Below, piece by piece: positions 5,237-56,703 of a DNA stretch of 64,000 bases. How positions within the stretch are numbered: position 1 is the first letter of the stretch; the number at the start of each line of letters is the position of its first letter. The stretch comes from Phyllobates terribilis (Eukaryota), in the NCBI RefSeq assembly GCF_046119375.1, contig NW_027362761.1, positions 311,426,001 through 311,490,000 of the forward strand. Reading direction: 5' to 3'. The translations under genes and the position numbers were made by a program. Below the pieces are notes generated by a model that did not search any database, was not told the DNA's origin, and saw only the letters and a program-made list of their open reading frames with translations.

Positions 5237-5254
5237 TGGCGTCACGAACAGGAT
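5237..5254 (+). promoter_or_regulatory. Primer binding site, tRNA-Ser(CGA)
   Basis: TGGCGTCACGAACAGGAT is complementary to the vertebrate tRNA-Ser(CGA) 3' end ATCCTGTTCGTGACGCCA (recalled sequence). Confidence 0.88.
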
Positions 5255-5346
5255 TTCGTGCCCGTTGCCACCGGGTACTGTGTGCTTTATTTGAACTGTA
5301 TATTTTCACTGGATGTGGCGCCCGCCCCAGAAGAACAGGCGCCATT

Positions 5347-29338: not shown

Positions 29339-30256
29339 TAGAGATGAGCGTTGTTCTACTCGAACTGTTCGCCAATCTCAAATTCGAGCTGTTTTGGGCG
29401 GTGTTCGAGCCGTTCGGCGAACACGAACGATTTGAGAAAAATTCGGCTGTTCGAGGTTATGTTCGATAACTGTTCGTGCACCAAAATCATAACTGGATTT
29501 TTTCTCAGTAATGATGAAAATTAATGTTAATACGCAGTTTGAGTGTACAGCGGGGTGGGGGGAGGGGCAGGGGATGGATCTCTGCAGGAATAATGAAGAT
29601 CTCCATTTTTTTTTCTCTTTCCCGCATTTACAGTGGGGAGGTGCAATCTGTCAGCCTATCAGCAGCGCACACACGGAGCGAAGTGCTTTTTTTCACACAA
29701 GCAAGGGCATGTGTCATTGGCAGTGTATATCACATGTCCTTGCCCTATAAGACCAAGCCATTTTCCCCGTCGCCACCATTTTCTCACTGCTGCAGCTGCG
29801 TGTTAGACGGCACCGCTGTTGCTGTGTGCGCTATACCTTGTTAATTTCAAGCCAATTTTCGCACAAATCTACAGATAGCTTGGGAGTAGGGAATAGTTGT
29901 GATTGCAGTCCTTTTAAGGACTAGGTTACAGCATTTCCTACGACTTTTATCAGGCAGGTCTGTGCTCTTAAATAGATAGGTTGTGGGAGTAAAGACTAAT
30001 TGTAATTGGAGTCCTTTTCAGGACTAGGTTACATCAGTTCCTATCAGTTTTTGCCAGGCAGGTCTGTGCCAGTGCTGTGCAAGTTTTTTTCACAGCATTT
30101 GGCTGAATCTAGCAAAGCTAATCCTTTTTGGCCTATTGCAGAGTGTGTTAGTCAGTGGAGTAGCCTATCTGTGTTGCAAGATATACCACCTGTGTATAGA
30201 ATACCAATTTTTTTACTGCACCTAGTGAAGTAAAATCTTTTGGGCATAGCATCATT

Positions 30257-31633
30257 CTATTAGTCCATCTATACTGACCTCCATCAGGTTGAAAATTGAA
30301 TATAATTTTTTTCTGCATCTAGCTCTGAAAAAATATTTGGCCTTCTAGCAGTGTGTGGGACTTTCTCTATTAGTCCATCTATACTGACCTCCATCAGGTT
30401 GCAAACTGAATATATTTTTTTCTGCATCTAGCTCTGAAAAAATATTGGGCTTGTAGCTGTGTGTGGGACTTGTTCTATTAATCCATCTATACAGACCTCC
30501 ATCAGATTGCAAACTGAATATAATTTTTTTCTGCATCTAGCTCTGAAAAAATATTTGGCCTTCTAGCAGTGTGTGGGACTTTCTCTATTAGTCCATCTAT
30601 ACTGACCTCCATCAGGTTGCAAATTAAAAATAATTTTTATCTGCATCTAGCTCTGAAAAAATATTTGGGCTTCTAGCTGTGTGTGAGACTTGTTCTATTA
30701 CTCCATCTATACTGACCTCCATCAGGTTGCAAATTGAATATAATTTTTTTCTGCATCTAGCTCTGAAAAAATATTGGGCTTCTAGCTGTGTGTGGGACTT
30801 GTTGTATTAGTCCATCTATACTGACCTCCATCAGGTTGCAAACTGAATATATTTTTTTCTGCATCTACCTCTGAATAAATATTGGGCTTCTAGCTGTGTG
30901 TGGGACTTGTTCTATTAATCCATCTATACAGACCTCCATCAGGTTGCAAACTGAATATAATTTTTTTCTGCATCTAGCTCTGAAAAAATATTTGGCCTTC
31001 TAGCAGTGTGTGGGACTTTCTCTATTAGTCCATCTATACTGACCTCCATCAGGTTGCAAACTGAATATAATTTTTTTCTGCATCTAGCTCTGAAAAAATA
31101 TTTGGCCTTCTAGCAGTGTGTGGGACTTTCTCTATTAGTCCATCTATACTGACCTCCATCAGGTTGCAAATTAAAAATAATTTTTATCTGCATCTAGCTC
31201 TGAAAAAATATTTGGGCTTCTAGCTGTGTGTGGGACTTGTTCTATTACTCCATCTATACTGACCTCCATCAGGTTGCAAATTGAATATAATTTTTTTCTG
31301 CATCTAGCTCTGAAAAAATATTGGGCTTCTAGCTGTGTGTGGGACTTGTTGTATTAGTCCATCTATACTGACCTCCATCAGGTTGCAAACTGAATATATT
31401 TTTTTCTGCATCTACCTCTGAAAAAATATTGGGCTTCTAGCTGTGTGTGGGACTTGTTCTATTAATCCATCTATACAGACCTCCATCAGGTTGCAAACTG
31501 AATATAATTTTTTTCTGCATCTAGCTCTGAAAAAATATTTGGCCTTCTAGCAGTGTGTGGGACTTTCTCTATTAGTCCATCTATACTGACCTCCATCAGG
31601 TTGCAAATTGAATATAATTTTTTTCTGCATCTA
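30257..31633. repeat. ~110-bp minisatellite, about 13 copies, inside the hAT
   Basis: CCATCTATAC.GACCTCCATCAGGTTGCAAA recurs every 108-110 bp. Decayed monomers also occur near 40380-40530 and 43920-43980. Confidence 0.95.
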
Positions 31634-31749
31634 ACCCAGCCAATAGTTTTGGCCTAATACCACAGTTTGGCCACTCAGCTCTGCTCGGTTCCCATCCATT
31701 GTTTTTTTGTGCAAACAACTCCAGAGTTGTGAATTAGTTAACCACCAAA

Positions 31750-32648
31750 ATGAGTGGAAAAAGGCCTGCTGCTGGTGGAAAGGGGAATAGGCGTGTTGGG
31801 AAGGGGAAAAAAGGTTGTGTCCGTGGGGTAGGTGTTAAAGCAACAGTAACATCTGCAGAAGAAAGACCATCTTCCAGCCAAACTAAAATGTCTACTTCTT
31901 TTAGCGGACAATGTGATAAGATCCCTTTCTTACGGCCACGCCAATCGCTACAAATTCCAGATGAGGCACAAAAACAGCAGGTGCTTCAACGGATATCAAG
32001 TGCTCCTTTAAGTGGGCTCTCCTCCACATCAACTTCAACATCACAAATACTCCAGTCCTCAAAGGTGTCACCCTAATCGCACTTGCTTCCTCACAGCTCC
32101 CAAATCTCCAGCTGCCCGTCTGAGTATGAGGTAGAACAGATGGTTGAGTCTGCAGAGCTGTTTACTCATACTATAGCCTGGGAATCAGAGGTCAACTCCA
32201 GCGCTTCTGTGAATCCAGACGAGGAAATGATCTGCACTGATGCCCAGAATCTTTATGAGTCGGATCCAGGACCAGACGCAGAAGGTTCTGACCATAATGT
32301 AGACCCTCATTCCCAAACTGTAACTCCTGTTGGTGGAGACAATGAGGAAGACGATGATGAGACTCAAATACCTGATTGGAGCGACAACTTTAGTTTTTTG
32401 TCAGGGCAGGAACAGGTTGGCTCTGAGGACCACGGGTGTGATAACACACAGGGTGATGATGATGAGGTTGGAGATCCCACTTACTGTCAACCCACAGTCA
32501 GCCAAGAGATGAGGTCAGCAGAGGAGGTGGAGGAAGATGCTAGTGACGACGAGGTCAGGTTGCGCCTTCCTGGACAGAGACGTAGTACTGGAAGCACGTC
32601 AACAACTGCATCCTCAAACACAACTCTGCCTCTCACCACAAGTCGTGG
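31750..32648 (+). pseudogene. hAT transposase N-terminal extension (one nonsense codon), interrupted by LTR element
   Basis: ORFs 31750-32076 and 32083+ share a frame. Removing 32649-37518 joins them in frame to 37519-40321 (about 1233 aa in total). Confidence 0.8.
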
Positions 32649-33842
32649 TGTAGCACCCTGAGGATTCGGCTGCTACAGGGGTATTGCACCTCAACCCAGA
32701 GGTGTGATATTCCACTCCCGGGTAAGGATGGAGTGTGGAACTGAGCTCGGTAGGCTGCATGCACTACACACATCCCATTTCCGGGGAGCAGACCGACGGT
32801 ACTCCCACTTGGAAATGTGCAGGTACGACCGAGTCTGTTCCTGGCTGGAGTGGGAGGGGGGTGGTACATCCCAAGTAGTGTAGGGGCAGATAGGGGGAGC
32901 AGCCTGGGTAAAGATAGGAGCTCATTGGGTGCTGGTCACCTGAGCTCACACATAGAGGGTGTATATAAGGTGGGCACCAACTAAGAACAGGGTCAGATGC
33001 AGAGAACAAGTCAGCAAGCAGAGGAGAAGAGAGACCCAGAGTGAGAGAGGAGAAGAGAGACCCAGAGGGGGAAACAGAAAAGAGGACTCCAAGAACCCAA
33101 CTTAAATCCCCGGGTGAAGAGTCGGCACAGGGTACCGGATCCCAAACTGGCGGGGGCAGAAAACACACCCTAGCCAGAGACCGGAGGCCGTGGGCAGCAT
33201 CTGCCACGGCCACCCATCACATCCACCCCGAAGGCACACCACATGAAGGGTCAGGGAACCCAAGGCCAAGGGTGTCCCAACAGAAGGCCCGAGGGAGCTG
33301 GACCTAGGTGGATCACTGGTGGGGACGGCCAGAGAACGGGACAGAAGGAGAGCTCAGGGCCACGCTCCGGACTTGTTTGGGGGTTGGCTGGATCCAGGAC
33401 CTGGTGGACGCAGCACGGCTCGGGTGGTCACTCGAAGCTGGAGTGACCAGTACAACATCTGCAGTAAGTAAACACCCTTAACTGCACAACCCGACTCTGT
33501 CTTCATTGCCGTCTGCACTGCACCACCACAACCCCCATCCTCTGCACCTGTCCCCCCTGAGGCTATACCCCTCCCGTTGGGGGTTATCCCACCAAGCTGC
33601 GCACCCACCATCAGCCTCAGCGGACCCTGCTGCAGCGGCGGCCACAGTGACCGCATCACAACGGGTGGCGTAGTCGACACAAAAGAACTCTTAATAACAT
33701 CTGTAGGACTGCCACATAACACTGAGTTTGACGCCCTGGGCACGGGCCGGGTCACAGCCGCTCGGAGACTACAACCCCCCATCTGATCCGGTGCCGGGTA
33801 TTCCCCTCAAAAAGGAATATGTCCCAGGGGGCGCGTCAACTT

Positions 33843-33860
33843 TGGCGTAGTCGGCAGGAT
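33843..33860 (+). promoter_or_regulatory. Primer binding site, tRNA-Ser(AGA/TGA)
   Basis: TGGCGTAGTCGGCAGGAT is complementary to the tRNA-Ser 3' end ATCCTGCCGACTACGCCA (recalled sequence). Confidence 0.9.
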
Positions 33861-34097
33861 TACGTGCCCGCAACACCCGGGTACTGCGGGCCTGAAGGAA
33901 AGTGCAAGTTTACCTCAAGAAGAAGTCTCCCGCCGGTTCCGGAGGGTCTACGCCATCGGACCCCATCACAGGTCGTTTCCCGCCGATTGTCCGCCATTTC
34001 CAGTTTGTTCCCGCCATCTGCAGAGTTTCCCGCCACTGGGCGACGCTTCCCGCCAAATCCGAAGATTTCCCGCCTTGGAAGAGCAGCGGACGCCATT

Positions 34098-35867
34098 ATG
34101 GGCGTGCCAAAGGAGGGCAAGAGGCCGCCTCCCATCGTGGGCCAGGACAGAAAATGGCGCCAAAAGTGGAAACCGCCCCCACCAACAGAGACTGTGATGC
34201 TAGAGGTGTCTGTCAGCGTGAAAGAACTACCCCTGGAGCTGACAGTCACCGAGTTGCCCCGGGACCGCCCTCAAAGTGGGAGGAGACGAAAGAAAAGAAC
34301 GAAGATGGGTGCCGCCTGGAGCAGTCTGGAGCGAGCGCACCCGGAGGCAGGAAGCCTGGAGAAGAGTAGCAGAGAAGCTCACCCGGAGATGGCGAGAGAG
34401 CAGAGCAGCACCGGCCCGCTGGCCAGGAGCCTGCTGGAAGAAGAGCAGAGCAGCACCGACCCGTTGGTCAGGAGCCTGCTGGAAACCACGACCCCACTAG
34501 GCCTAGTGGAGGTCCTTGCACAGCTCCCCCGAGACCGGGAGTGTGCACAGACTGCCCTGGAGAACCTCGCACAGAGGTTGGCCCGGGTACAGCGAGAGAC
34601 ATTGGCGGAGTGGAGCCGAGAGATGGCCCAGCAAACCAAGACCCGGAGCACGCCAGCCAAGATGAGGAGACAGACCGCCTCTGAGGATGGCGCGGGAGGA
34701 CCCAAGGCCGGAGACGGCGCCGAGAAGGGAGCCGAACGCATGGAGGCAGGTAAAGGGGACGTCTATACCCCAAACCGGGACACCGCTTACCTGCCCCAGC
34801 TCCCCGTCGCAGAGCCCGAAAGTCCCCCTGCTGTGCCCGAAAACGCCATGTCACCGACGCAGACTAGGCCCCAACCGGAAGCCGCCGCCGCGACCCCTGT
34901 GACGTCACGCGCCTCGACCCGGAGCGTGACAAAGCAGGAAATACCACCAGCCTGGTCGCAAGGCCTAGTACCCCCGGGCGCCGCATCACCAACAGCGCCC
35001 CCTACCTCCGCGGAGCCTCCGGCCTGGCCGCAAGGCCAGGTAGCCCAGGGCGCCGCCGTCCTAACGGTGCCCTTCACCTTCCAGGTGCCCCAGGCCTGGC
35101 CGCAAGGCCTGGGCAACCCGGGCGCCACCACCACCGCGCCCGCACCCGTAAAACCAAGGGTGCCGCGTCTGGGAGAGGACTTGTTTGCCCAGCACACGTG
35201 GCCGGACGGGCAGCCTTTCATCTGGCCCCAGAGGTATTATGAACTGGAGCACCAGAGGAGAGTTGGGGCCATGTGTGCACCCCTGATTCCGGCTCCGAAG
35301 CCCGTGAGAAGGATCTCGCCCCCGCTTGAAGAGGCCCAATTTGAGTGGGACCCCACCGGAGAAGACCTAATGGGGTTCACTCAGGAAACCAGGGCAGCTG
35401 CAGCGGAGCGTGCTGAGTGTTGCCGACAGCAGCTCGAAGAGTTTGCGAGGGAGCGGAGAGAGAGGCGGGTCCGGGAACAGCAGGCCCAAGTACGGAGTGC
35501 CGAGCAGAAGAGCCGGACCAGGAGGGACCCCCGTGCAGCGCATTGTCCCCGCACCATCGGGACAGTGATCAAGTTCAACCAGCAGCATGGGTGGGGCTTC
35601 ATCCGAGACAACAACACCCCCGGCGACGTCTTTGTCACGCGCAGAGACGTGGAGTCCCATCTGCCGGAGGGGCACAGAGGTCGTGACCTCTACATCGGAG
35701 ACGAGGTCACCTTCACCCGGCACAAGTGTGCCAAAGGACCTTACGCCCTCCACGTACACCGCCTGACGGAGGAGGAGTTGCGGTGCGAGGAGGAGGAGCA
35801 AGAGGACCCGGACGGGTCTGAAGTTACAACCAGCTACAAGCAAAGAGCAGGAGGAAGACGCCGTTGA
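34098..35867 (+). CDS. ~589-aa protein: low-complexity N-terminus, coiled coil, C-terminal cold-shock (CSD/OB-fold) domain, acidic tail
   Basis: CSD at about 35553-35765: GTVIKFNQQHGWGFI..DVFVT..GDEVTFT..AKGPYALHV. The frame is open from 33819; ATG 34098 (CGCCATTATG) was chosen by colinearity with the 5347 homolog. Confidence 0.88.
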   Translation: MGVPKEGKRPPPIVGQDRKWRQKWKPPPPTETVMLEVSVSVKELPLELTVTELPRDRPQSGRRRKKRTKMGAAWSSLERAHPEAGSLEKSSREAHPEMAREQSSTGPLARSLLEEEQSSTDPLVRSLLETTTPLGLVEVLAQLPRDRECAQTALENLAQRLARVQRETLAEWSREMAQQTKTRSTPAKMRRQTASEDGAGGPKAGDGAEKGAERMEAGKGDVYTPNRDTAYLPQLPVAEPESPPAVPENAMSPTQTRPQPEAAAATPVTSRASTRSVTKQEIPPAWSQGLVPPGAASPTAPPTSAEPPAWPQGQVAQGAAVLTVPFTFQVPQAWPQGLGNPGATTTAPAPVKPRVPRLGEDLFAQHTWPDGQPFIWPQRYYELEHQRRVGAMCAPLIPAPKPVRRISPPLEEAQFEWDPTGEDLMGFTQETRAAAAERAECCRQQLEEFARERRERRVREQQAQVRSAEQKSRTRRDPRAAHCPRTIGTVIKFNQQHGWGFIRDNNTPGDVFVTRRDVESHLPEGHRGRDLYIGDEVTFTRHKCAKGPYALHVHRLTEEELRCEEEEQEDPDGSEVTTSYKQRAGGRRR

Positions 35868-37534
35868 GTGCGGCAGAGCAGGAGATGTAGATAGTTACCC
35901 GACCGGGTACCAAAGAAACTGTTGCTACATATATATAGTCCCCGTTGGGACCAGCATGAGTGAACTGTGTACCCGTTATTCCGTATCCATACCAGGCTGA
36001 GGACTGTGAGCAGCCATTCCCTTTCCCTCCTTAACTGGCCGAGGGCTGAGAGCGGCCAACTTCCCCTGTATATAGTTGCGCTTCCTAAAGCGCCCCCTAC
36101 TGGTTTTATAGGAAAACCAGTTTTCCAGAGAGACTGTCGCACTTTACCCGGTCACACGTTGCACAGTGACCGGAGGAGAAGCAAGAAACGACGACGAGAA
36201 TGTTTTATAAGAAAGAATGTTTTATTTGCTAATATATGTTGTTTTATATGTTTATGAAAAATTTTGTATGTTTTGGTGTTTTGTCTTACAGCCCGAGGAC
36301 GTGCTGTGATTTACCAGGGGGGAATGTAGCACCCTGAGGATTCGGCTGCTACAGGGGTATTGCACCTCAACCCAGAGGTGTGATATTCCACTCCCGGGTA
36401 AGGATGGAGTGTGGAACTGAGCTCGGTAGGCTGCATGCACTACACACATCCCATTTCCGGGGAGCAGACCGACGGTACTCCCACTTGGAAATGTGCAGGT
36501 ACGACCGAGTCTGTTCCTGGCTGGAGTGGGAGGGGGGTGGTACATCCCAAGTAGTGTAGGGGCAGATAGGGGGAGCAGCCTGGGTAAAGATAGGAGCTCA
36601 TTGGGTGCTGGTCACCTGAGCTCACACATAGAGGGTGTATATAAGGTGGGCACCAACTAAGAACAGGGTCAGATGCAGAGAACAAGTCAGCAAGCAGAGG
36701 AGAAGAGAGACCCAGAGTGAGAGAGGAGAAGAGAGACCCAGAGGGGGAAACAGAAAAGAGGACTCCAAGAACCCAACTTAAATCCCCGGGTGAAGAGTCG
36801 GCACAGGGTACCGGATCCCAAACTGGCGGGAGCAGAAAACACACCCTAGCCAGAGACCGGAGGCCGTGGGCAGCATCTGCCACGGCCACCCATCACATCC
36901 ACCCCGAAGGCACACCACATGAAGGGTCAGGGAACCCAAGGCCAAGGGTGTCCCAACAGAAGGCCCGAGGGAGCTGGACCTAGGTGGATCACTGGTGGGG
37001 ACGGCCAGAGAACGGGACAGAAGGAGAGCTCAGGGCCACGCTCCGGACTTGTTTGGGGGTTGGCTGGATCCAGGACCTGGTGGACGCAGCACGGCTCGGG
37101 TGGTCACTCGAAGCTGGAGTGACCAGTACAACATCTGCAGTAAGTAAACACCCTTAACTGCACAACCCGACTCTGTCTTCATTGCCGTCTGCACTGCACC
37201 ACCACAACCCCCATCCTCTGCACCTGTCCCCCCTGAGGCTATACCCCTCCCGTTGGGGGTTATCCCACCAAGCTGCGCACCCACCATCAGCCTCAGCGGA
37301 CCCTGCTGCAGCGGCGGCCACAGTGACCGCATCACAACGGGTGGCGTAGTCGACACAAAAGAACTCTTAATAACATCTGTAGGACTGCCACATAACACTG
37401 AGTTTGACGCCCTGGGCACGGGCCGGGTCACAGCCGCTCGGAGACTACAACCCCCCATCTGATCCGGTGCCGGGTATTCCCCTCAAAAAGGAATATGTCC
37501 CAGGGGGCGCGTCAGTGGTGGCTCTTCAGGTCGC

Positions 37535-40321
37535 ATGGGTGCTAAGCCTTGCATAGCCTGGGCATTTTTTCAGATCGATAAAGATGACCCAACTCGTGTT
37601 ATCTGTAACATTTGTCAGCAAAAGCTAAGTAGAGGCCAAAAAATACATAGTTTGAGTACTTCATGCATGAACCGGCACATGGACATGAAGCATAAGTTGC
37701 AGTGGGAAGCTCAGTGTGCTACAATGCGGCCTAGCCGGCCGGGCCAACCACCGTCTGCCATATCTTGTGCATCCGCGGCCTCTTCATCCTCTGTGACTGG
37801 GGGGACAGCAGTCACACCTGTTTTGGGGCGCAGACCTGCCACCTCTTTACCCGCAACAGCCAGCGTGATTGGCAGGTCATCATTTTCTTTGGAGGTGGTA
37901 ACACCAGCTGGTGTTGAGTGCTGTCCGACATCGATAGCACCACCTTTGGATCAAGGCAACCTAACATGTCCGCCTGCATCTTCCTCACAGACCGGCAGTT
38001 TGCCGGGGACACCCTTATCAACCCCGTCTAAGCACAATAGACAGCCCTCGGTCCCTCAGATGTGGACAAGTAAAAGACCATTTCCTCCTAGCCATGAGAA
38101 AGCTAAGAGGTTGAATTTCACCATCTGCAAGCTCCTGGCTACAGAAATGCTGCCTTTCCGCCTGGTGGACACAGAGGATTTTCGAGACCTTATGTCCGTC
38201 GCAGTGCCCCAGTACCAGATGCCCAGTCGGCACTACTTCTCAAAGAAAGGTGTGCCTGCGCTCCACCAGCATGTCGCATACAACATCACCGCTTCTTTGA
38301 GAAACTCTGTGTGTGACAGGGTGCATTTCACCACAGACACTTGGACGAGTAGGCATGGACAGGGGCGTTACATGTCGCTGACTGGGCACTGGGTAACTAT
38401 GGTGACAGCAGGACAAGGGGCTGCTGTCCAAGTCTTGCCGTCCCCACGAGTTGTGCGTCAATCCTCTTTATGTCAAAGTTCCTCCACTGCTTCTGCCTCC
38501 TCAACCTCCTCTCGGTCTTCCACCTGCACCCAAAGCCTGTCTGGTCATGCCACAAGCTTTCTAACTGCGCAGAAGGGATCCTGCACATCTCCTTACTATG
38601 CTGGCAGTAGGGCTCAACGTCATCAGGCGGTTTTTACTTTGAAATGTCTGGGAAATGTGAGTCACACAGCTGAGGAGTTGTGGTCAGCTCTGGAGAACCA
38701 ATTTCATGAATGGCTGTCTCCACTGGACCTGAAACCAGGGAAGGCCGTGTGCGACAATGCTGCAAACCTGGGTGCGGCCCTTCGCCGGGGCAATGTCACA
38801 CACGTGCCTTGTATGGCTCACGTGTTGAACCTGGTTGTCCAGCAATTTTTAGCCCACTATCCCAGACTAGATGGCCTTCTGCAGAGGGCACGGTTGCTGT
38901 GTGCTCACTTCCGCCGTTCGCATCCCGCAGCTCAGCGACTTACATCTCTACAGAAGTCGTTGGGCCTGCCACTTCACCGGCTAAAATGCGATGTGCCTAC
39001 CCGGTGGAATTCAACTCTGCACATGTTGCAGCGACTGTGGCAGCACCGACAAGCCCTGGTGCAATACGTTCTGACGTATAGCCTGGGCCAACGAGATTCA
39101 GAGGTGGGGCAAATCACGCTGGAGGAGTGGTCTCAGATCAGGGACCTATGCACCCTTCTGCACAGTTTTGAAATGGCGACGAAGATGTTTAGTGCTGACG
39201 ATGCCATTATCAGCATGACTATTCCGGTGATTTACATGCTGGAGCACATGTTAAACAGAATTCGGAGTCAGGTGGTGGCACAAGAGGAGGTGGAGGAAGT
39301 AGAGGAGGAGGAGTTATATGCGGAAGGGCTAACATCTGCAAGGTCCAGACGGTCGGCAGCACCAAGGCGGCAGGCATGTGAGGGTGGGGGAGATGGTTTT
39401 ACCAGGGCGCATGGTAGCAGCCAAACTAGTGAGGAAGGTGCAGGAGCCCAGGAAGAAGTGGAGGACGAACTGATGGAAGACTCATCAGATGAGGGAGACC
39501 TTGATCACATTTCTGTTGTGCGAGGTTGGGGGGAGAGGACAGAGGAAGGAAGCATGATTGTTACCTCGCCACCAACACAACAGGGACTTGGTGCTCCTGG
39601 ATGCGCAACACACATGAGTGCCTTCTTGCTGCACTACCTGCAACATGACCCTCGAATTGTGAGAATTAGAAATAATCCTGACTACTGGGTTGCCACACTG
39701 TTAGATCCCCGGTACAAAAGTAAATTTGCAGAAATTATTCCTGCCATAGAAAGGGATGCACGCATGCAGGAGTATCAGCAGAGACTGTTGCAGAATCTTA
39801 CATGTGCTTTTCCACAAAATACCAGTGGTGCACGTAGTGAATCTCACAGTTCCAACTTGCCAACCGTGGGACCGTCAAGTGTTCAGCACTCAAACCGTAA
39901 CAGAACCACAGTATCTGCTGGTAACATGAATTTTGCGGAATCATTTCACCACTTTTTTAGCCCATCCTTTGCAAGGCCACAGGAGACAAGAAGTCTGACA
40001 CATAGTCAACGCCTAGAGACGATGGTACAGGAGTATCTCCAAGTAAACATTGAAGCCACGACTGTGTCACTGGACCCTTGCTCTTTTTGGGCTTCCAATC
40101 TGGATAAATGGCCGGAGCTAGCCACTTACGCCTTGGAGATCTTGTCATGCCCCGCAGCCAGCATTCTGTCTGAACGTGTGTTCAGCGCTGCTGGTGGTGT
40201 GCTGACAGATAAGCGCACGCGGCTCTCCACTGATAATGTAGACAGACTCACGTTCATAAAGATGAACAAATCATGGATCCGAAACGACTTTTCTACCCCT
40301 GTGTCATCCTGGGGAGAGTAA
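37535..40321 (+). CDS. hAT transposase, 928 aa (BED finger, DDE, dimerisation domain), no stops
   Basis: ICNICQ..RHMDMKH BED finger, TTDTWTS, VCDNAAN, CMAH, TRWNST, AASILSERVFSAAG, RLSTDNVDRLTFIKMN. Confidence 0.93.
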   Translation: MGAKPCIAWAFFQIDKDDPTRVICNICQQKLSRGQKIHSLSTSCMNRHMDMKHKLQWEAQCATMRPSRPGQPPSAISCASAASSSSVTGGTAVTPVLGRRPATSLPATASVIGRSSFSLEVVTPAGVECCPTSIAPPLDQGNLTCPPASSSQTGSLPGTPLSTPSKHNRQPSVPQMWTSKRPFPPSHEKAKRLNFTICKLLATEMLPFRLVDTEDFRDLMSVAVPQYQMPSRHYFSKKGVPALHQHVAYNITASLRNSVCDRVHFTTDTWTSRHGQGRYMSLTGHWVTMVTAGQGAAVQVLPSPRVVRQSSLCQSSSTASASSTSSRSSTCTQSLSGHATSFLTAQKGSCTSPYYAGSRAQRHQAVFTLKCLGNVSHTAEELWSALENQFHEWLSPLDLKPGKAVCDNAANLGAALRRGNVTHVPCMAHVLNLVVQQFLAHYPRLDGLLQRARLLCAHFRRSHPAAQRLTSLQKSLGLPLHRLKCDVPTRWNSTLHMLQRLWQHRQALVQYVLTYSLGQRDSEVGQITLEEWSQIRDLCTLLHSFEMATKMFSADDAIISMTIPVIYMLEHMLNRIRSQVVAQEEVEEVEEEELYAEGLTSARSRRSAAPRRQACEGGGDGFTRAHGSSQTSEEGAGAQEEVEDELMEDSSDEGDLDHISVVRGWGERTEEGSMIVTSPPTQQGLGAPGCATHMSAFLLHYLQHDPRIVRIRNNPDYWVATLLDPRYKSKFAEIIPAIERDARMQEYQQRLLQNLTCAFPQNTSGARSESHSSNLPTVGPSSVQHSNRNRTTVSAGNMNFAESFHHFFSPSFARPQETRSLTHSQRLETMVQEYLQVNIEATTVSLDPCSFWASNLDKWPELATYALEILSCPAASILSERVFSAAGGVLTDKRTRLSTDNVDRLTFIKMNKSWIRNDFSTPVSSWGE

Positions 40322-43790: not shown

Positions 43791-44017
43791 TACAGGGCCG
43801 TGATTTTGGCTATAAAAGGGTCCCCTAGACCCCTACCCCAAGCTTTTTAAGAGAATCATATATGGCGTGCCAGGAGACTCTATGGAATGCTTTCTCAGCA
43901 TCCAACGAGAGTATCTAATTACAAATTTTTAACTGCATCTAGCCCAGGAAATACTTTGTGCCTAGTAGCAGTGTCTGCTAGTCAGCGGATTATCCCGGCT
44001 GTTAAGCAAGCTACACC

Positions 44018-44292
44018 ACCTGTAGTTTAGACACTTAATTTTTTCAAAGGAAATGCTTCGGGACCATGGGATACTTAGTGAAGAGCATCAGGAGGCACCC
44101 CAAGGCATAGGGGCTGGGACTGGCAGTAGGATGCCTTGCGGTGGACAGCCGAGCTCGATCCTTATAAAAGCTTTTTAACTGCAGCAGCTTTAGTGGACGC
44201 TACTGGAGCTGGAATTACCGCGGCTGCTGGCATGAGACTTGCCCTCCAATAGATCCTTGTAAATGGATTTAAAGTGTATTCATTCAAATTAG
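44018..44292 (-). pseudogene. Decayed 18S rRNA fragment (V3-V4 region)
   Basis: Contains GGAGCTGGAATTACCGCGGCTGCTGGCA (519R primer site), TAATTTTTTCAAAG and AGCTTTTTAACTGCAGCA, colinear with 18S antisense. Confidence 0.88.
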
Positions 44293-44803
44293 AGAGACAA
44301 TTTAAATTAAAAAGCTTAGAGCTGCCTCCACCACAGGGGGGCTCGCTCGACCCACCAGCGGACAGGCACCAGTATTGGGAGAGGGGGGCTGGCCGTCAGG
44401 GTTCACCGCGGCTCTGGCACAAACCCGGCGACACGGAGGTGGCACGGGCAGGAGCGGACTGAACGTGTCGGCTTCTCACTTTTTGGATTTTAGAAGGGCA
44501 TGACATGCCTATATCTGTGTCTCCCCCTCCTTTTACTCCTCCACCTCTTTTATTTTCGCATGACTATATGTACTTGTCACTTTTCCATGTGTTAGTTATG
44601 TCTTCTGAGCAGTTTGTCAGCTTTTGGACACCTTTGAAGGTGTTTTCTATGTGTTTCTATGTGTTTTTGTTTGCCTGCCATTGGTTTTAACGGTGTTCGA
44701 AGGTGTTCGACGAACAGTTCGACGAACAGTTCGGCGAACACACGGGTGTTCGACGAACCGAACCGAACTCGAACACTACGGGGGTGGCTCAACACTAGCC
44801 AAG

Positions 44804-45865
44804 ATGTCCGACGAACAGCAGAACGCCGACCTGCCGGTCAATGTCCCTGAGTTGCAACCCGCGCCCGATGATGAACAGGCCGAAGCCGCCACTCCACCTT
44901 CAGCGCCTGTAACACCTGTAATTCCTATGACTTTACTGTACATTCCTGGAGCGAAGTGGCTCCCCCAGTATAACGGCAAACCAGATACCCTGTCTGGATT
45001 CAAACGGAAGATAAGTGGTATCTTAGACATGTACTCTATGACCGGCAAACAAAGAGCAGCCGTGGTATTAGGACAACTGACTGGTGCTGCGGAACGGGAA
45101 GTGGAAATATGGTCGGCAGCAGACCAGGAGTCAGTGTCCGCAATCTTTCAAAAACTACAGACTGTCTTTGAGGACCTTACTGAGGCGGACCTCCGGATGA
45201 GGTTCTACAGCTGCTCCCAACAACCGGAGGACAATGTTCGGGACTACGCCTGGCGTCTTCAAGGGGCCCTGAGGGCTCTGAACCAGGTTAGTCCAACCAG
45301 CGTTGAAAATGAGAACAAAATGCTGAAGAAACAGTTTGTCTGGGGACTGAAGTCTCCAGAGGAGAGCAGGACAGTGCGTTGGTGGTCCCTGGATCATCCA
45401 GATGCCACCTTTGACAACCTTAAGGACATGGCTATAAAAGGACTGCAGCCCCTGGAAACAAATGCCATCCAACATTACCAGGGTGGGGCTACCCCAGGGC
45501 CTGCTTCACCTACCTTGTCCCCAGTGGCTGCTGAAGCTAAGGTTCCAGCAACATCCCCTAAAGAACTGGACAGTCTGCGCTCGGAGGTGCGTCAGTTGAG
45601 CAAAACCCTGACCACCGTGCTGAGTGCTCTGCAGCTGCGGACGGAGCCCGAGGAAGGAGGGAAAATCCTGCTAGCCGATAGCCCTGAGGATGTCCCCTGG
45701 ATACGGAGGAGGAGGAGGCCAACACTGCCCTCGCCGAGGATCAGTGAGCAGCGCCGTCCACAGAAGGACCCTGCCTGCTACCGCTGCCGCAAGACCGGAC
45801 ACCTCGCCCAGAAGTGTCCTTTAAAAGAGAAAACCCTGGGTCCGAGGGCCAACACCCAGGAGTAA
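44804..45865 (+). CDS. gag: Gag of element B, PNMA-like with CCHC knuckle, 353 aa
   Basis: MSDEQQ..WLPQYNG..LTGAAEREV..CYRCRKTGHLAQKC. Confidence 0.88.
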   Translation: MSDEQQNADLPVNVPELQPAPDDEQAEAATPPSAPVTPVIPMTLLYIPGAKWLPQYNGKPDTLSGFKRKISGILDMYSMTGKQRAAVVLGQLTGAAEREVEIWSAADQESVSAIFQKLQTVFEDLTEADLRMRFYSCSQQPEDNVRDYAWRLQGALRALNQVSPTSVENENKMLKKQFVWGLKSPEESRTVRWWSLDHPDATFDNLKDMAIKGLQPLETNAIQHYQGGATPGPASPTLSPVAAEAKVPATSPKELDSLRSEVRQLSKTLTTVLSALQLRTEPEEGGKILLADSPEDVPWIRRRRRPTLPSPRISEQRRPQKDPACYRCRKTGHLAQKCPLKEKTLGPRANTQE

Positions 45866-48800
45866 ACTCACCAGGCCCATCAGACTGGTACAACCGGTTC
45901 GTCGGAGGAAGACCTTTCCTGTCCATTGTACTGGACGGGATCCCGACACATGCCCTGCTGGACTCAGGATCTCAGGTAACCATCATGCCTGACGTCCTCT
46001 ACAAGAGGTTCTGGACCATGGACGACCTACGTCCGCCAGCTCCAAATTTGACTGTATATGCCTCAAATGGACTCCCCCTTAACCTACTAGGGGTTAGGAA
46101 TGTGACTGTAAAGGGGTGGAGAGTGGAGCTGAAGGACCAGGGGCTAATTGTAGTAGAGACTAATCCTGATGACACCAATCCGTACATGGTACTTGGCACT
46201 AACATTGTTGGTAACTGTTTGGGAGAGGTTGTGTTCTTACTCCAACAGATAGCTGACACTGCCAAACCAGGACAGAGGAGGGCACTGCAGAAGGAAATCC
46301 GAGTCCTGATTTATCAACAGCAAGTGAGGTTAACAGACGGTGAAATTGGTAACGTGCGGGTAACAGACCCCATACCCATTGTCATCCCCCCAATGAGTGA
46401 AATGCTCATCTGGTGTAGAGCTGCCATAGGTCTTAGAGGACAGAGCTACCAGGCGGTAGTAGAACCCCTTTGCTCTGAGCACAGACCCACGATCTTAACC
46501 ACCCGGGGAGTGGTAGATGTACGCAATGGGAGGGTGCCTGTCTGTCTTCTCAACTTAGGGGAAGATGAGGTCAGACTGCCACGTTATGCCACTGTTGCCA
46601 AATTACATGCTGTCAATAACAACTGCATTCATGAGGCGGAGTCCTTAACTTCACCAGACAAAGTGGAGGAAAATGACCTTGCAACCCAGGTGGAGGATTG
46701 GTGTCAACAGCTCCATGTTGGGACAGACACCACTCATGCCCATCAAAAACAGGGTGTATACCGGGTGGTTCAAGAATACTCGCAGGTGTTCAGTAAACAT
46801 CCACTAGACTTTGGGAGGATTAAGGGGGTTCAACATCATATCCCCACAGGTGACCATCCCCCAATCAAAGAACGTTACAGGCCTATACCACCAGCTCACT
46901 ACCAAAAAGTAAAAGAAATGCTGCATGACATGAGGAAGGCGGGAGTAATAAGGTATAGTTGTAGTCCATGGGCAGCTCCCATAGTGCTGGTTAGGAAAAA
47001 GGACGGGAGCATGAGAATGTGTGTAGATTACCGACAAGTAAATCGCATTACACATAAAGATGCATACCCTTTACCATGCATAGAGGAGTCCCTAGCTGCC
47101 TTAAAGTCTGCAAATTACTTTTCTACCCTTGACCTCACTAGTGGGTACTGGCAAGTAGCTGTGGCTGAGGAGGATCGGGAGAAGACGGCTTTCACTACCC
47201 CGATGGGACTCTGCGAGTTCAACAGTATGCCGTTTGGACTCCAACGCCCCCGGAACGTTCCAGAGATTGATGGAGTGCTGCCTGGGACACCGCAACTTCG
47301 AGACTGTGTTACTTTACCTGGATGATGTAATAGTGTATTCCAGAACGTACGAGGACCACTTGAAGCACCTGGCAGAGGTATTTGAGTCACTGTCCCGGTA
47401 CGGGATGAAGTTGAAGCCCTCAAAGTGCCACCTGCTCAAGAGAAAGGTACAGGACCTGGGGCACATTGTCAGTCTGGAAGGGGTAGCACCAGACCCGGAG
47501 AAAGTCACTGCCATTCAGAAGTGGCCAGAGCCGAAGAACCTCAAGGAGGTGCATCAGTTCTTGGGACTAGTAGGATACTACCGGAGGTTTGTGAAAGACT
47601 ATACTAAGAAAGCAGCCCCTCTGCAAGACCTCCTGGTAGGGCAGTCCCCCAAAGGCAAAAACCCCCTATTGCACTGGGGTAAGGAGCAAGCCGAGTCGTT
47701 TCAGGAGATGAAGGAGATCCTGACGGGTGAAGAGATCCTAGCCTACCCTGACTACAGCCAACCGTTCCTGCTGTATACAGATGCCAGCAACGAAGGGCTG
47801 GGAGCTGTCCTAAGTCAGAAGCAGAATGGCCAAGAAAAAGTGATTGCATACGCAAGCAGGAAGCTCCACCCGACTGAGAGGAACCCAGAGAACTATAGCA
47901 GCTTTAAGTTAGAGTTCCTGGCCTTGGTCTGGGCCATCACTGAAAAGTTTAAGCACTATCTGGCCTCCAGCAAGTTCACTGCCTTTACTGATAACAACCC
48001 CTTGACACATCTTGAAACAGCTAAGCTCGGGGCACTGGAACAACGATGGATGGCTCGGCTGTCAAATTACCAATTTACAATTGAATACCGAGTGGGCCGC
48101 AAGAACGCCAACGCCGATGCCCTGTCTAGGATGCCTCACCAGTCAGATACAGAAGAAGAAGTGGATGACTTGGAAGAGATAGAGCTACCTGCCTTTCACT
48201 GGAGTGGGATGATCCACGAGCAACGAGCCTCCAGGAAGCAGCATGGAAAGACGATAAACCCCCTTCCTCCCCACAGCTGGAAAGAGACCCAGGACAGTGA
48301 CCCGGTTGTCAGCCGCATCAAGGAGCTGATAACTCAAGAGGGTGCCTCACTGGAGAAAGATGCGTCTCTCCAAGCAAAGTAGCTGTGGAACGAGAGAAGC
48401 CGGTTGTTTATCTACCGTGAGAAGCTGTGCCGGAGGTACGTCAATTCAAGAACCCATGAGATGGTATGGCAGATAGTGGTCCCGAAGACAGACATCCAGA
48501 TGGTATTAGAAGCTTACCATGATCAGGCGGGGCACTTTGGCTGGAAAAAGCTAGAGACCCTGCTGAAGTGTCGATTCTACTGGGTAGGAATGCGCAGCTC
48601 CATTGAACGGTGGTGCCGAGACTGTGGACCCTGTGGCCTTAGAAGGAAAGACTACAGCAGCCAGAAGGCACCCCTGAAACCCACCAAGACGACTCGGCCC
48701 CTGGAGATCGTGGCCCTGGACCATGTCAAGCTGTTACCAGCAGGTCAGGGTACTCCTATGCTCTGACCATGGTGGATCACTACTCACGTTTCCTGGTGGT

Positions 48801-49959
48801 CGCCTCTGTCAAAGACCTGATGGCAGAGACAGCAGCAAAGACGTTTCAAGCGTATTTCTGTAGACCCCATGGTTACCCTGTGCAGGTGCTGACGGACCAA
48901 GGCCCGGCCTTTGAGGCTGAGTTGTTCAAGGAGTTCTGCCATTTGTACGGTAGTAAAAAGATAAGAACTACACCGTACCACCCACAAACCAACTGTCTCC
49001 GCGAAAAGATGAACAACATCATCATCGACCTGCTAAAAACTATACCACTTGAGGAGAGAAATCAGTGGACAGACCTACTACCTGACCTAGTGGATCTGTA
49101 CAGTCATATACCAGTCAGTTCCACCAACTGCACTCCGGCATATCTCATGCGGGCAAGGCCAGGAAAGCTGCCCATGGATCTGGAGTTTGGTGTTGTTGAG
49201 CCTGAAGCTGATATGACCACTGAAGACTGGGACAAGACCAGACAAGAGCAGTACAGAAGAGTACAAGCCTGTGTCGAGGATAGTCTTACTCGGGTGAGAG
49301 AAAAGCAGGAAGCGCACTACAACAAAAACGCACCCGCAGAACCTTTCATACCAGGTGAAACAGTATTAAAATGGAAAAGACGTAACCACAAACTTGATGA
49401 CCTGTGGGAAAAAGACCCCTACACTGTGTTACCGTCAAGATTTGACAATAAGAAGGCATGCATAATCAGTCAAGATGGAGGAAAAACATCTACCACAGTG
49501 TCCAGGGATCACCTAAAGTTGTGTCCAGACTTACTGAAACCCCAGGAAGAAGTGCCTCTCACAATCCCAGAAGAACCTAAAGAAACAGTGATCCACACTG
49601 ACATAGGAGACTTCCCAGCAGATTGGCCTCAGATAGGAGGAGCAGTAATCATCCCAGTACTCCAATTCTATGAACAGCCAGAAAACCCTCCACAGCAAGT
49701 TGAACCTGTAAGTGCTGCAGAAGAGCCAGCTCAAGAAGTATCCCCGGATGAAGGATCCCCGGTAGGAGCAGAGCAAGAGGGCCCAGCCAATGGTAGACTT
49801 GCCAGCCCAAGAGAGAGTTTAAGGCAGTTTTACAACATGGTCACACGTAGAACTGGTAGAGTAACTGAAAATACAGACACTGACACCCCACAGACCACCG
49901 CACTACGCAGATCAACACGTAGCACGCGAGGTAAACCCCCTGCTAGGTACACGCAGTAG
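45820..49959 (+). pseudogene. pol: Pol of element B (PR-RT-RH-IN), two frameshifts and one nonsense codon
   Basis: Split across ORFs 45814-47325, 47234-48382, 48404-48766 and 48769-49959. LLDSGSQ, YLDD, DAS, HHCC and DDE motifs present. Confidence 0.93.
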
Positions 49960-56547: not shown

Positions 56548-56703
56548 CATGCAGTACAGCATATTACAAACATAAGTTCCATTATTGGGGAGTGTGTCTC
56601 CCATAGTATTTGCTTATGCTTTCCCAGCAAAAGCTGCCAAAAATTAGGACGGAGCAACTTGCAATGCCCCTTACAAGAGCCATGCAGTACAGCATATTAC
56701 AAA

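Follow-up and report, generated by a model that had tools for sequence, protein, structure and literature searches.

Why would an LTR retrotransposon that encodes neither gag nor pol keep a gene for a cold-shock-domain protein? The question is raised by one element (hereafter W) of the stretch of 64,000 nucleotides of the Phyllobates terribilis genome that was analysed here, referred to as the window. W in all likelihood belongs to a family of non-autonomous LTR retrotransposons that descends from Ty3/Gypsy elements and is present in dendrobatoid (poison and rocket) frogs. The literature searched contained no earlier description of such an element, so that a family with its own cold-shock-domain gene and without gag or pol is apparently an undescribed arrangement, as the preliminary description, made from the sequence alone, had supposed.

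Structure of the element

W (32649-37514) is an intact, structurally complete LTR retrotransposon that was very recently inserted (Table 1). Its LTRs start with TGTAGC, end with GCGCGTCA and differ from each other at one base only (33155/36831). After in silico excision of W together with one GTGG copy, a frame of 1124 codons runs open through the insertion site; this interrupted frame is that of a hAT transposase. The primer-binding site (PBS) begins 4 nt after the 5' LTR; 0.02 matches to its 18 nt are expected per window by chance, and the antisense template oligonucleotides printed for human tRNA-Ser in PMC3299991 begin with exactly this sequence. No Pfam match to protease, reverse transcriptase (RT), RNase H, integrase, capsid or CCHC was obtained in W. 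The gag and pol of the window Gypsy elements, used as tblastn queries, gave no match to W either. W is devoid of gag and pol, yet it possesses LTR ends, PBS, conserved leader and polypurine tract (PPT), i.e. all the cis parts required for reverse transcription and integration.

The preliminary description had reported 1190-bp LTRs with one mismatch, a GTGG target site duplication (TSD), a tRNA-Ser PBS, a PPT and the lack of gag and pol, and had seen in W a non-autonomous LTR element keeping its own cold-shock-domain gene. All of this held. The ORF start that it gave, ATG 33819, did not: this codon lies inside the LTR and is followed by a probable leader of about 93 to 190 codons.

Table 1. Features of W, related elements of the window and relatives in other loci and species; residues (aa) are counted along the 682-codon frame, protein lengths from the ATG named
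Feature	Position or species	Strand	Description
5' TSD copy GTGG	32645-32648	+	pairs with 3' copy
5' LTR	32649-33838	+	1190 bp, TG..CA ends
5' leader	33839-34097	+	in-frame open, behaves as non-coding cis-acting RNA
PBS TGGCGTAGTCGGCAGGAT	33843-33860	+	18 nt including CCA, complementary to tRNA-Ser 3' end
Cold-shock-domain protein CDS (likely extent)	34098-35867	+	589 aa from ATG 34098, stop included
Alternative CDS start	ATG 34389	+	492 aa
N-terminal amphipathic helix	34536-34646	+	aa 240-276, conserved family motif D.E..L.AE.EEL.RRL
Pro/Ala-rich region, predicted disordered	34647-35381	+	aa 277-521, pLDDT <50
Long Arg/Glu/Gln-rich alpha-helix	35382-35525	+	aa 522-569, directly before cold-shock domain
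Cold-shock domain, five-stranded beta-barrel (predicted)	35550-35762	+	aa 578-648, motifs GWGFI and DVFVT
3' untranslated region	35868-36315	+	no ORF, no gag/pol remnant
PPT AGGGGGGAA	36316-36324	+	adjoins 3' LTR
3' LTR	36325-37514	+	1190 bp, repeat offset 3676
3' TSD copy GTGG	37515-37518	+	matches 5' copy
elem2	3996-7700	+	older sibling non-autonomous element, LTRs 95.4% identical
GypsyA	13379-20916	-	Ty3/Gypsy; intact gag (PNMA-like capsid and CCHC) and pol (PR-RT-RH-IN), by Pfam
elem3	56702-61614	+	internally deleted Gypsy copy, RNase H and integrase only (Pfam)
L001	P. terribilis		1247-bp LTRs 100% identical, own TSD ACAA, ORF intact
L006	P. terribilis		LTRs ~95% identical, ORF frameshifted
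L003	Anomaloglossus		LTRs 99.5% identical, TSD GGCCC, ORF intact
L005	R. variabilis		LTRs 98.7% identical
L002	R. variabilis		5' LTR rearranged
L004, L007	R. imitator		decayed

Leader and start codon

The sole ORF of W (33819-35867, 682 codons) starts within the 5' LTR and its frame passes through the PBS. Between W and the Phyllobates copy L001, the leader is 93-98% identical in nucleotides, above the LTR and the coding part. The first 93 codons of the ORF give a dN/dS of 1.18, with differences distributed 2/6/5 by codon position, and the CpG observed/expected ratio of the leader is 1.06. A leader block 3' of the PBS is common to W, elem3, elem2 and L003. The leading ~93 to 190 codons thus likely behave as an untranslated leader, the protein being shorter than 682 aa. 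Translation is expected to start at 34098 or 34389, and the former is the better candidate. The context of ATG 34098 (gccattATGg) is kept in W, L001, L006 and elem2; the gene models of relatives begin at the position equivalent to 34389.

The cold-shock domain

The ORF of W ends in a genuine cold-shock domain according to Pfam, AlphaFold and Foldseek, the fold itself being predicted by a model. Residues 581-647 match Pfam PF00313 with 34.4 bits (E=2e-8) for a gathering threshold of 27 bits, and this profile is matched by six of the eight family members. Compared with the PDB, the family profile retrieves YB-1 (3e-7, 33.5 bits) and CspA (1e-6, 31.9 bits). The domain is modelled with a pLDDT of 71-91 and was superposed by Foldseek on CspA, CspB and YB-1 with a TM-score of 0.85-0.90, the rmsd to CspA and CspB being ~2 Å; the matches in PDB and BFVD are solely cold-shock or OB-fold proteins.

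A separate AlphaFold model of an Anomaloglossus protein (P0003) has the same architecture as that of W. The N-terminal helix is predicted in both and supported by the family alignment, while the Arg/Glu/Gln-rich helix has a pLDDT of ~90 in W and up to 96 in P0003. The alignment also contains a conserved F.W....L.GF motif near the end of the Pro/Ala-rich region. Outside the cold-shock domain and the two helices both models consist of low-confidence coil, and a capsid-like fold is absent from both. Four stacking residues are known in YB-1, W65 and H87 among them (PMC7498358). The family keeps F74 and F85 and replaces Y72 by an invariant Trp; the places of W65 and H87 are taken by K, A, D or S in the former case and by T, A or N in the latter. 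Since two of the four stacking residues are not conserved, the binding mode may differ.

The probable Gypsy helper family

Without capsid, protease, RT and integrase, W must rely for its copying on Gag and Pol supplied by an autonomous Gypsy family. The helper is likely a Ty3/Gypsy family with members in the window, represented there by GypsyA and its internally deleted relative elem3, with which W has PBS, LTR ends, leader and PPT in common. The 3' LTR of GypsyA ends with GGGGCGCGTCA, an end motif also present in the LTRs of W, whose last ~300 bp are 73-77% identical to the LTRs of the window Gypsy family. The LTR start and PPT of GypsyA are near-identical to those of elem3, those of W being variants (TGTAGCACCC against TGTGGCACCCC for the LTR start), and similar PPTs are found in W, GypsyA, elem3, elem2 and L003. 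The elem3 copy, with LTRs of 1067 bp that are 99.7% identical, has at 57775 a tRNA-Ser PBS identical to that of W; its leader resembles that of W and its protein is 95.6% identical to GypsyA pol. The 5' LTR of this GypsyA copy lacks its last ~110 bp, and the PBS is missing. As this is the only gag/pol-bearing copy of the helper family in the window, no fully competent helper was seen there.

Relatives and selection

LTR-flanked relatives of W, several of them young and intact, occur in four dendrobatoid species belonging to Phyllobates, Ranitomeya (two species) and Anomaloglossus. The ORF is intact in at least five copies, which together represent the four species, with 35-87% protein identity over the helix and the cold-shock domain. 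The sibling elem2 shares with W the leader, the N-terminal helix module (5605-5844), short 3' UTR blocks (5944-6035 and 6423-6460) and the PPT; it has no cold-shock domain, and a PBS of a second type is located at 5237. No close host progenitor of the ORF was found among 1.84 billion representative proteins.

The dN/dS values were obtained from W and L001, the sole informative pair, the others being saturated. For aa 501-650 (helix and cold-shock domain) dN/dS is 0.065, with 17/16/63 differences by codon position (Fisher P=6e-29); the two halves, aa 501-575 and 576-650, give 0.058 and 0.056. The value is 0.23 for aa 191-682 (P=7e-29) and 0.36-0.55 for the Pro/Ala-rich disordered region; for aa 94-190 it is 0.50 and does not reach significance. 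Along the element, dS ranges from 0.04 to more than 1; W and L001 are therefore mosaics and these rates are not those of one clean history. Within the limits of one informative pair, the gene has been under purifying selection along lineages that were still transposing.

Proposed role of the protein

The cold-shock domain announced by the preliminary description held, as it passes the PF00313 threshold and its predicted fold superposes on CspA, CspB and YB-1. The likeness drawn to Y-box proteins needs correction: the kinship of the domain with them is not close, and its score with bacterial CspA is almost equal to that with YB-1. Three outcomes had been named as refutations, and none of them occurred. 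The first, the lack of a cold-shock HMM or fold match, is contradicted by the matches just named. The second, a single copy with dN/dS near 1, is contradicted by copies in four species and the dN/dS of 0.065 over helix and cold-shock domain; for the third, an ORF aligning to a catalogued Gypsy ORF, comparison with the gag ORFs of the window Gypsy elements gave nothing significant. The roles suggested at that time (RNA chaperoning or masking, competition for helper capsids, evasion of silencing) are hypotheses only.

The reading preferred here, somewhat more likely than not (probability of about 0.55), is that the W protein binds its own RNA and aids its entry into helper particles. Function, RNA binding, cis preference and packaging are all inferred, in the absence of experiment or expression data. 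The protein is taken to aid the element's own propagation because selection acts on the element lineage. It would bind the element RNA via the cold-shock domain, probably the very RNA from which it was translated, and would stabilise or chaperone it; the RNA-bound protein would then raise the share of the element in helper particles. For host YB-1, assembly with the Gag and RNA of MMTV has been reported (PMC4486188), as has a supporting role in the RNA metabolism and the early steps of HIV (PMC6040738).

Alternative explanations

The alternative that survives best, and remains possible, is that the ORF is a strongly derived Gag which lost its capsid, kept N-terminal and spacer-helix parts to co-assemble with helper Gag and exchanged its zinc-knuckle nucleocapsid for a cold-shock domain. 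W would then be a 'gag-only' non-autonomous element like BARE2 of barley with a swapped RNA-binding module. In favor of it, the ORF occupies the gag position directly after the leader, and the cold-shock domain could perform the nucleocapsid job. Moreover, the sole hhalign alignment of the family N-terminal module with the window gag profile pairs the D.E..L.AE.EEL.RRL helix with the gag capsid-CCHC helix (DLHHQVQELAKSV / ELDSLRSEVRQLSKTL). However, this alignment falls short of significance (probability 0.9%, E=0.064 in one single comparison), BLASTP and whole-profile hhalign against the window gag gave no match, and neither the AlphaFold models, without capsid-like fold, nor Foldseek, with cold-shock/OB-fold matches only, lend it support.

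It is unlikely, though supported by the same selection evidence as the packaging model, that the protein serves the element otherwise, by masking or stabilising its transcript in germ cells, by tuning the switch between translation and packaging or by blunting the silencing that the host directs at the element or at its helper. Y-box proteins mask or stabilise stored maternal mRNA. As in eukaryotic Y-box proteins, the loop between strands 3 and 4 of the cold-shock domain is long, and a single gap suffices to align the domain to YB-1; the long disordered region and charged helix suit an mRNP or condensate protein. Nevertheless, the identity of the domain to YB-1 is just ~33%, and the sequence offers no means of telling this role from packaging.

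That the ORF is a piece of a host gene, caught once by template switching and carried as neutral cargo of no use to the element, is very doubtful. LTR retroelements do capture host sequences, with gene capture and additional ORFs published, and no function was shown for the W protein; against this stand the low dN/dS and the strong bias to third codon positions between two young insertions that arose independently, the intact ORFs in four species and the lack of a close host progenitor. Finally, host genes (LOC143808358, LOC142258684 and others) lying by chance between LTR-like repeats and selected for a host function can be practically ruled out, although NCBI annotates several copies as protein-coding loci: each copy is at a different site with its own TSD and near-identical LTRs, W interrupts the hAT frame, PBSs and PPTs are present, several gene models are chimeric, with Harbinger or MADF parts, and some copies are frameshifted.

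Comparison with known systems

Like W, LARDs, TRIMs, the gag-only BARE2 of barley and Dasheng of rice have complete LTRs, PBS and PPT, lack pol and are mobilised in trans. W shares their dependence on an autonomous partner whose cis sequences match its own, and a family of this kind is found in the same window. LARD and TRIM interiors are non-coding and BARE2-type elements keep a recognisable gag; the interior of W, in contrast, codes for a conserved protein that is not a Gag and bears a cold-shock domain. Replication-defective retroviruses such as the acutely transforming ones, and maize Bs1, also depend on helpers and carry a foreign or novel ORF between their LTRs, in place of or beside gag-pol; additional ORFs are described in LTR elements of bdelloid rotifers (PMC5408684) and gene capture in crocodilian ERVs (PMC4299795). 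Unlike these gene-capturing retroelements, W has no recognisable host progenitor for its ORF, which is kept across diverged, still-active sublineages in four species. Its retention under purifying selection in these species points to a role in the element life cycle rather than to cargo.

With Y-box proteins (YBX1/2/3, FRGY2 of frogs) W shares the long strand-3/strand-4 loop and RNP1/RNP2-like motifs, and YB-1 is the best match of the family by sequence among solved structures. Identity to YB-1 is nonetheless limited to ~33%, with a near-equal score to CspA (33.5 vs 31.9 bits), conservation does not extend to W65 and H87, and the flanking architecture is different and family-specific.

LINE-1 ORF1p and the nucleocapsids of retroviruses and retrotransposons are nucleic-acid chaperones coating their own RNA, and the likeness of the W protein to them is functional and only proposed; no sequence or structural homology was detected by Pfam or Foldseek. 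W is of LTR type, without ORF2 or pol, and its fold is a cold-shock OB-barrel in place of the RRM plus CTD of LINE-1 ORF1p or the CCHC knuckle of nucleocapsid. Its layout is nevertheless akin to that of ORF1p, with a helix, a disordered region and a single-strand nucleic-acid-binding domain in the first ORF of the transcript. If the packaging model is correct, the W protein would be a functional analogue of nucleocapsid or LINE ORF1p built on a different RNA-binding fold.

Structure and insertion site of the element

The cold-shock-domain LTR element of the window (W) meets the structural definition of an LTR retrotransposon, with an LTR pair, a target-site duplication, a primer-binding site and a polypurine tract all present. 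Its LTRs are direct repeats of exactly 1190 bp each that begin with TGTAGC and end with GCGCGTCA, fulfilling the TG..CA criterion for LTR termini, and both flanks carry the duplication GTGG. The primer-binding site, TGGCGTAGTCGGCAGGAT, is an 18-mer located 4 bases past the 5' LTR, for which 0.02 occurrences per window are expected by chance. Antisense template oligonucleotides for human tRNA-Ser start with the same letters, 18 out of 18 (PMC3299991), and the 18-mer is therefore the complement of the tRNA 3' end including CCA. The human template was used as the reference because no tRNA gene was found in the window or in the loci of the relatives, where such genes were sought to check the site against frog tRNA. 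The polypurine tract, AGGGGGGAA, directly adjoins the 3' LTR. A motif scan of the LTR returned one TATATA and no AATAAA and was uninformative for TATA and poly(A) signals, and no known RNA family was detected within W by Rfam. W had been described, in a preliminary description made from sequence alone, as a young non-autonomous LTR element keeping its own cold-shock-domain gene. All the elements so described were found in the sequence and the main interpretation is supported, the function being still inferred.

W is a clean insertion into another transposon. In silico removal of W and of one GTGG regained an open frame of 1124 codons that continues into a hAT transposase ORF (BED finger and hAT dimerisation domain). 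Of these codons, ~190 acidic ones precede the annotated Met, and a tandem array directly precedes the interrupted ORF.

Features of W and of its surroundings in the window
Feature	Position	Strand	Description
elem2, sibling of W	3996-7700		Older non-autonomous element; LTRs about 1230 bp, 95.4% identical
elem2 ORF	5605-5844		N-terminal helix module
GypsyA, Ty3/Gypsy element	13379-20916	-	Intact 393-codon gag (PNMA-like capsid and CCHC), intact 1351-codon pol
Tandem array	30219-31720		~110-bp repeats, 10 or more copies, 64-96% identical
Interrupted hAT-type transposase gene	32077-32648 and 37519-40321		928-aa ORF from 37535
W	32649-37514		4.9 kb
W 5' LTR	32649-33838		Sole mismatch between LTRs at 33155
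W long ORF	33819-35867		682 codons
W polypurine tract	36316-36324
W 3' LTR	36325-37514
Small-subunit rRNA match	43986-44350	-	Rfam eukaryotic model, 77 bits, 365 nt against model positions 4-1116
Gypsy gag-pol	44609-49959		Frameshifted
Diverged LTR	about 55523-56703		75% similar; adjoins elem3
elem3, Gypsy copy	56702-61614		Internally deleted, RNase H and integrase only; LTRs 99.7% identical
Short tandem repeats	61596-62017		133-bp repeats; adjoin elem3

Coding capacity

W has a single long ORF. An exact look-up of its 682-residue product returned no record, Pfam recognized nothing in it besides the cold-shock domain (PF00313), and tblastn with the window's own Gypsy gag and pol revealed no gag or pol remnant inside W, only similarity in the leader. 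The ORF start previously proposed did not hold: the ATG at 33819 is located inside the LTR and its frame passes through the primer-binding site. The comparison was made with the closest relative, the Phyllobates terribilis locus L001, to which nucleotide identity is 93-98% from the LTR end to ~34300, about 90-94% in the LTR and 72-91% in the remaining ORF. Codons 1-93 show a dN/dS of 1.18 without third-position bias. Judging from the identity profile and the dN/dS, they constitute a conserved non-coding leader rather than protein. Two downstream codons may serve as the true start, yielding an ORF of 492-589 codons: the ATG at 34098 (context gccattATGg), kept in four elements, and the ATG at 34389, which corresponds in the alignment to the initial Met of gene models from relatives (MEHSS.., MEESQ.., MASGG..). 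From codon 191 onward the sequence is clearly coding (dN/dS 0.23, P=7e-29).

The protein and its cold-shock domain

The Pfam match to PF00313 covers residues 581-647 (E=2e-8, 34.4 bits for a cutoff of 27) and was recovered in 6 of 8 family members. The W protein from residue 191 and, independently, its Anomaloglossus relative P0003 were modelled by AlphaFold2 with the family alignment, and the two predicted structures agree in layout. An amphipathic N-terminal helix (W residues 240-276, family motif D.E..L.AE.EEL.RRL) is predicted to be followed by ~240 residues of Pro/Ala-rich coil of low model confidence, an Arg/Glu/Gln-rich helix of 48 residues (522-569, pLDDT about 90), a five-stranded barrel (578-648, model strands 388-458, pLDDT 71-91) and a short C-terminal tail, acidic then basic. 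The W model meets the cold-shock criterion of a five-stranded antiparallel OB-fold, and the P0003 barrel is alike. Searched with Foldseek against the PDB, the W barrel matched solely cold-shock proteins (CspA, CspB, CspC, YB-1, YBX2, CRHSP-24), with TM scores of 0.84-0.90 and rmsd of 1.7-2.2 A for the best matches (CspA, CspB and CspC). Against predicted viral structures, solely phage and giant-virus cold-shock or S1-like proteins were retrieved, and Gag was absent among them. The cold-shock fold of the W protein is regarded as certain.

With the family domain profile, YB-1 scored highest (3e-7, 33.5 bits) and CspA nearly level (1e-6, 31.9 bits), Lin28 and CARHSP1 being far lower. Alignment to YB-1 requires a single gap, and the long loop that joins strands 3 and 4 is retained. 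In YB-1, residues W65, F74, F85 and H87 stack on nucleic acid (PMC7498358). The equivalents of F74 and F85 are conserved in the W family, which also has an invariant Trp at the position of Y72. The position of W65 is occupied by K, A, D or S and that of H87 by T, A or N, neither aromatic nor His. Because only part of the stacking residues are kept, nucleic-acid binding by the W protein is likely but possibly altered; this is an inference made without binding data.

Selection and mosaic history

W and L001 are independent, very young insertions, and the differences between them therefore arose along lineages that were still transposing. The dN/dS estimates rest on this one informative pair; distant pairs, at 35-50% protein identity, were excluded for saturation of synonymous sites. 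In the charged helix and cold-shock domain, differences are distributed 17/16/63 by codon position. On this pair, the cold-shock-domain gene is under purifying selection in still-transposing lineages.

Substitutions along the ORF, W compared with L001
Codons	Region	dN	dS	dN/dS	Support
1-93	Leader	0.050	0.042	1.18	Differences 2/6/5 by codon position
94-190	Uncertain	0.071	0.142	0.50	Not significant
191-290	N-terminal helix region	0.164	0.602	0.27	P=3e-6
291-500	Disordered linker	0.109-0.169	about 0.31	0.36-0.55	Sub-blocks P=0.035, P=0.0011
501-650	Charged helix and cold-shock domain	0.091	1.40	0.065	Fisher P=6e-29

Between W (33839-35867) and L001 (9184-11293), dS increases from a leader value of 0.04 to more than 1 in the domain. 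Because dS varies in this way along the element, W and L001 are recombinant mosaics of differently aged sublineages, in which the LTRs and leader are recently related and the coding parts diverged earlier. Recombination between co-packaged RNAs would yield such mosaics. It also follows from the spread of dS that diverged alleles of the gene each remained intact.

Relatives in dendrobatoid frogs

Exhaustive searching of 1.84 billion representative proteins with HMMER returned 46 hits, and those extending past the cold-shock domain came from dendrobatoid frogs only. Protein identity over the helix and domain is 35-87% among core members, and P. terribilis and R. variabilis each harbor at least two sublineages. 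In L003, a stop codon bounds the upstream side of the ORF.

Loci carrying relatives of W
Locus	Species	LTRs	Other features
L001	P. terribilis	1247 bp, 100% identical	ACAA duplication, tRNA-Ser primer-binding site as in W, ORF intact end to end
L002	R. variabilis	3' LTR full, 5' LTR rearranged	Intact ORF
L003	Anomaloglossus baeobatrachus	1284 bp, 99.5%	GGCCC duplication, different primer-binding site, intact 481-codon ORF
L004	R. imitator	No clear LTR pair	Decayed
L005	R. variabilis	98.7% identical	Open ORF, degraded domain motifs
L006	P. terribilis, second subfamily	About 95%	tRNA-Ser primer-binding site, frameshifted ORF
L007	R. imitator	No clear LTR pair	Decayed, primer-binding site present

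A second type of primer-binding site, TGGCGTCACGAACAGGAT, was found in other family members. It is also that of elem2, which shares with W the leader, the N-terminal helix module, 3' UTR blocks and the polypurine tract and is devoid of a cold-shock domain. The existence of two types suggests that modules made of LTR and primer-binding site were swapped between helper lineages.

Word-indexed protein searches for more family members added just P0001, P0048, P0049 and P0004. This yield says little about copy number because repeat-borne ORFs are mostly missing from annotated proteomes. Several of the NCBI gene models for the loci are chimeric. In the public models P0048 (L006 10001-37501) and P0049 (L007 10001-14962), the cold-shock-domain ORF is fused to Harbinger transposase or MADF exons; these models are annotation chimeras that mask the transposon origin.

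Several candidates were rejected as members. P0047, encoded at L008 (Logan run ERR14218477), P0031 and P0043 loosely resemble the family in layout and otherwise share the cold-shock domain alone; they were not counted, L008 being without nucleotide similarity to the family. The dinoflagellate proteins P0005 and P0006, which contain multiple cold-shock domains, are generic domain matches. A Pro-rich N-terminus, a helix and a cold-shock domain with VFV.RR.V were observed in L008 (384-1436), P0047, P0023 and P0031, whose sources are unidentified and in which nucleotide similarity to the frog family is absent; these may be distant relatives in other animals or convergent proteins. No cellular progenitor gene was found among the 1.84 billion representatives (frog genomes were outside this scope), where the transposon-borne frog copies were followed by weak generic cold-shock-domain hits.

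The candidate helper

GypsyA is located 12 kb from W in the same window. Its pol encodes protease, reverse transcriptase, RNase H and integrase and matches RVT_1, RNase H, rve and Integrase_H2C2. Its 5' LTR lacks the last ~110 bp and the primer-binding site is lost, so that this copy, though its genes are intact, is probably unable to move. The RNase H-integrase segment of elem3 shares 95.6% identity with GypsyA pol, and the LTRs of the two elements are about 90% identical. Within this Gypsy family, elem3 is a young non-autonomous derivative of a second type.

W and the GypsyA/elem3 family have in common the LTR end GGGGCGCGTCA, variants of the LTR start (TGTAGCACCC against TGTGGCACCCC), 73-77% identity across the final ~300 bp of the LTR, a conserved block past the primer-binding site and polypurine tracts that resemble each other; W and elem3 also have the 18-nt tRNA-Ser primer-binding site in exactly the same form. 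These are the parts that integrase, reverse transcriptase and packaging Gag must recognize, and the proposal of this family as helper is therefore well grounded. The helper of W is likely the GypsyA/elem3 family or a close relative, without this being proven, the GypsyA copy itself having no primer-binding site.

Elsewhere in the window, the small-subunit rRNA match, a fragment or heavily deleted copy, lies just upstream of the frameshifted Gypsy gag-pol.

Proposed function and alternatives

W comprises all the cis parts, no enzymes and a conserved cold-shock-domain gene. That the encoded protein raises the element's own transposition success is inferred. In the preferred mechanism, the protein would use its cold-shock domain and the neighboring basic helix to bind single-stranded RNA, would prefer the transcript that encoded it, and would stabilize or chaperone this RNA, enlarging its share of helper particles. 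Such a role would be akin to that of nucleocapsid or LINE ORF1p. Retroviruses use host YB-1 in assembly (PMC4486188) and RNA metabolism (PMC6040738), and by analogy such a role is plausible for an element-encoded relative.

A bolder reading is that a lineage of LTR elements devoid of Gag and Pol parasitizes an autonomous Gypsy family by means of its own cold-shock-domain RNA chaperone, which would coat the transcript in cis for delivery to helper particles. We place its probability clearly below one half.

One rival to the preferred mechanism is that the protein would instead mask mRNA, control translation or counter silencing. Another is that it is a derived Gag minus the capsid domain. The sole hint in favor is one helix alignment, itself insignificant, and neither BLASTP nor hhalign gave significant support. 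The proposals that the ORF is neutral cargo or a host gene are both disfavored by purifying selection, by the insertion within a hAT frame and by persistence across diverged sublineages.

The usual picture of non-autonomous retroelements is one of passive RNAs for which a helper provides everything. In the helper-dependent W family, strong purifying selection has preserved a single protein gene while the element transposed repeatedly in several frog lineages; the product of this gene, inferred to bind nucleic acid through a cold-shock domain, is neither a capsid nor an enzyme. Should the preferred mechanism be correct and the protein steer RNA into helper particles, it would represent a new route by which genomic parasites compete for a helper, an independent invention of the ORF1p/nucleocapsid role with a different fold, and a retroelement supplying itself with a Y-box-like activity for which some retroviruses rely on the host. 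If the bolder reading is true, it would add an LTR-element parallel to LINE ORF1p, based on a fold with no earlier link to retroelements, and a "satellite" strategy whereby the parasite puts its resources into capturing RNA and not into capsid or enzymes. The system lends itself to testing: the element is small, there are copies that combine an intact ORF with identical LTRs, and a candidate helper whose gag and pol are both intact is nearby. It may also bear on the large Gypsy-type expansion in poison-frog genomes (PMC6278860).

Comparison with known systems

No LTR retrotransposon with a cold-shock domain was described in the limited literature searched, including the paper on transposable elements of the strawberry poison frog, which is not proof that none has been. 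In structure, W belongs to the non-autonomous LTR retrotransposons and descends from Ty3/Gypsy elements. The pol criterion of Ty3/Gypsy elements (PR-RT-RH-IN order, Gypsy-type reverse transcriptase) is unmet, and because W has no pol it can be assigned to this group only as a derivative, by similarity in cis sequences. The criterion for such a derivative is met, the LTR end, primer-binding site and leader block being common with the Gypsy family, and the LTR start and polypurine tract being variants or similar.

LARDs have a non-coding interior, and TRIMs are miniature elements with LTRs of about 100-250 bp. In contrast, the interior of W holds a selected ORF of 492-589 codons and its LTRs are long, which excludes both classes. 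W cannot be considered a gag-only element either: no Gag homology was found, with no Pfam match to capsid or CCHC, no significant BLASTP or hhalign similarity to the window's gags and no capsid fold in the models. Vertebrate Y-box proteins have a cold-shock domain that is near-identical from one vertebrate to another and is joined to Y-box N- and C-terminal domains. Compared with these, the W domain is about 33% identical to human or zebrafish YB-1 and its flanks are unrelated by Pfam; the gene thus meets the definition of the domain but not that of the family. The layout of W resembles that of retroelements carrying captured genes, but its progenitor is not visible and the gene persists across active sublineages.
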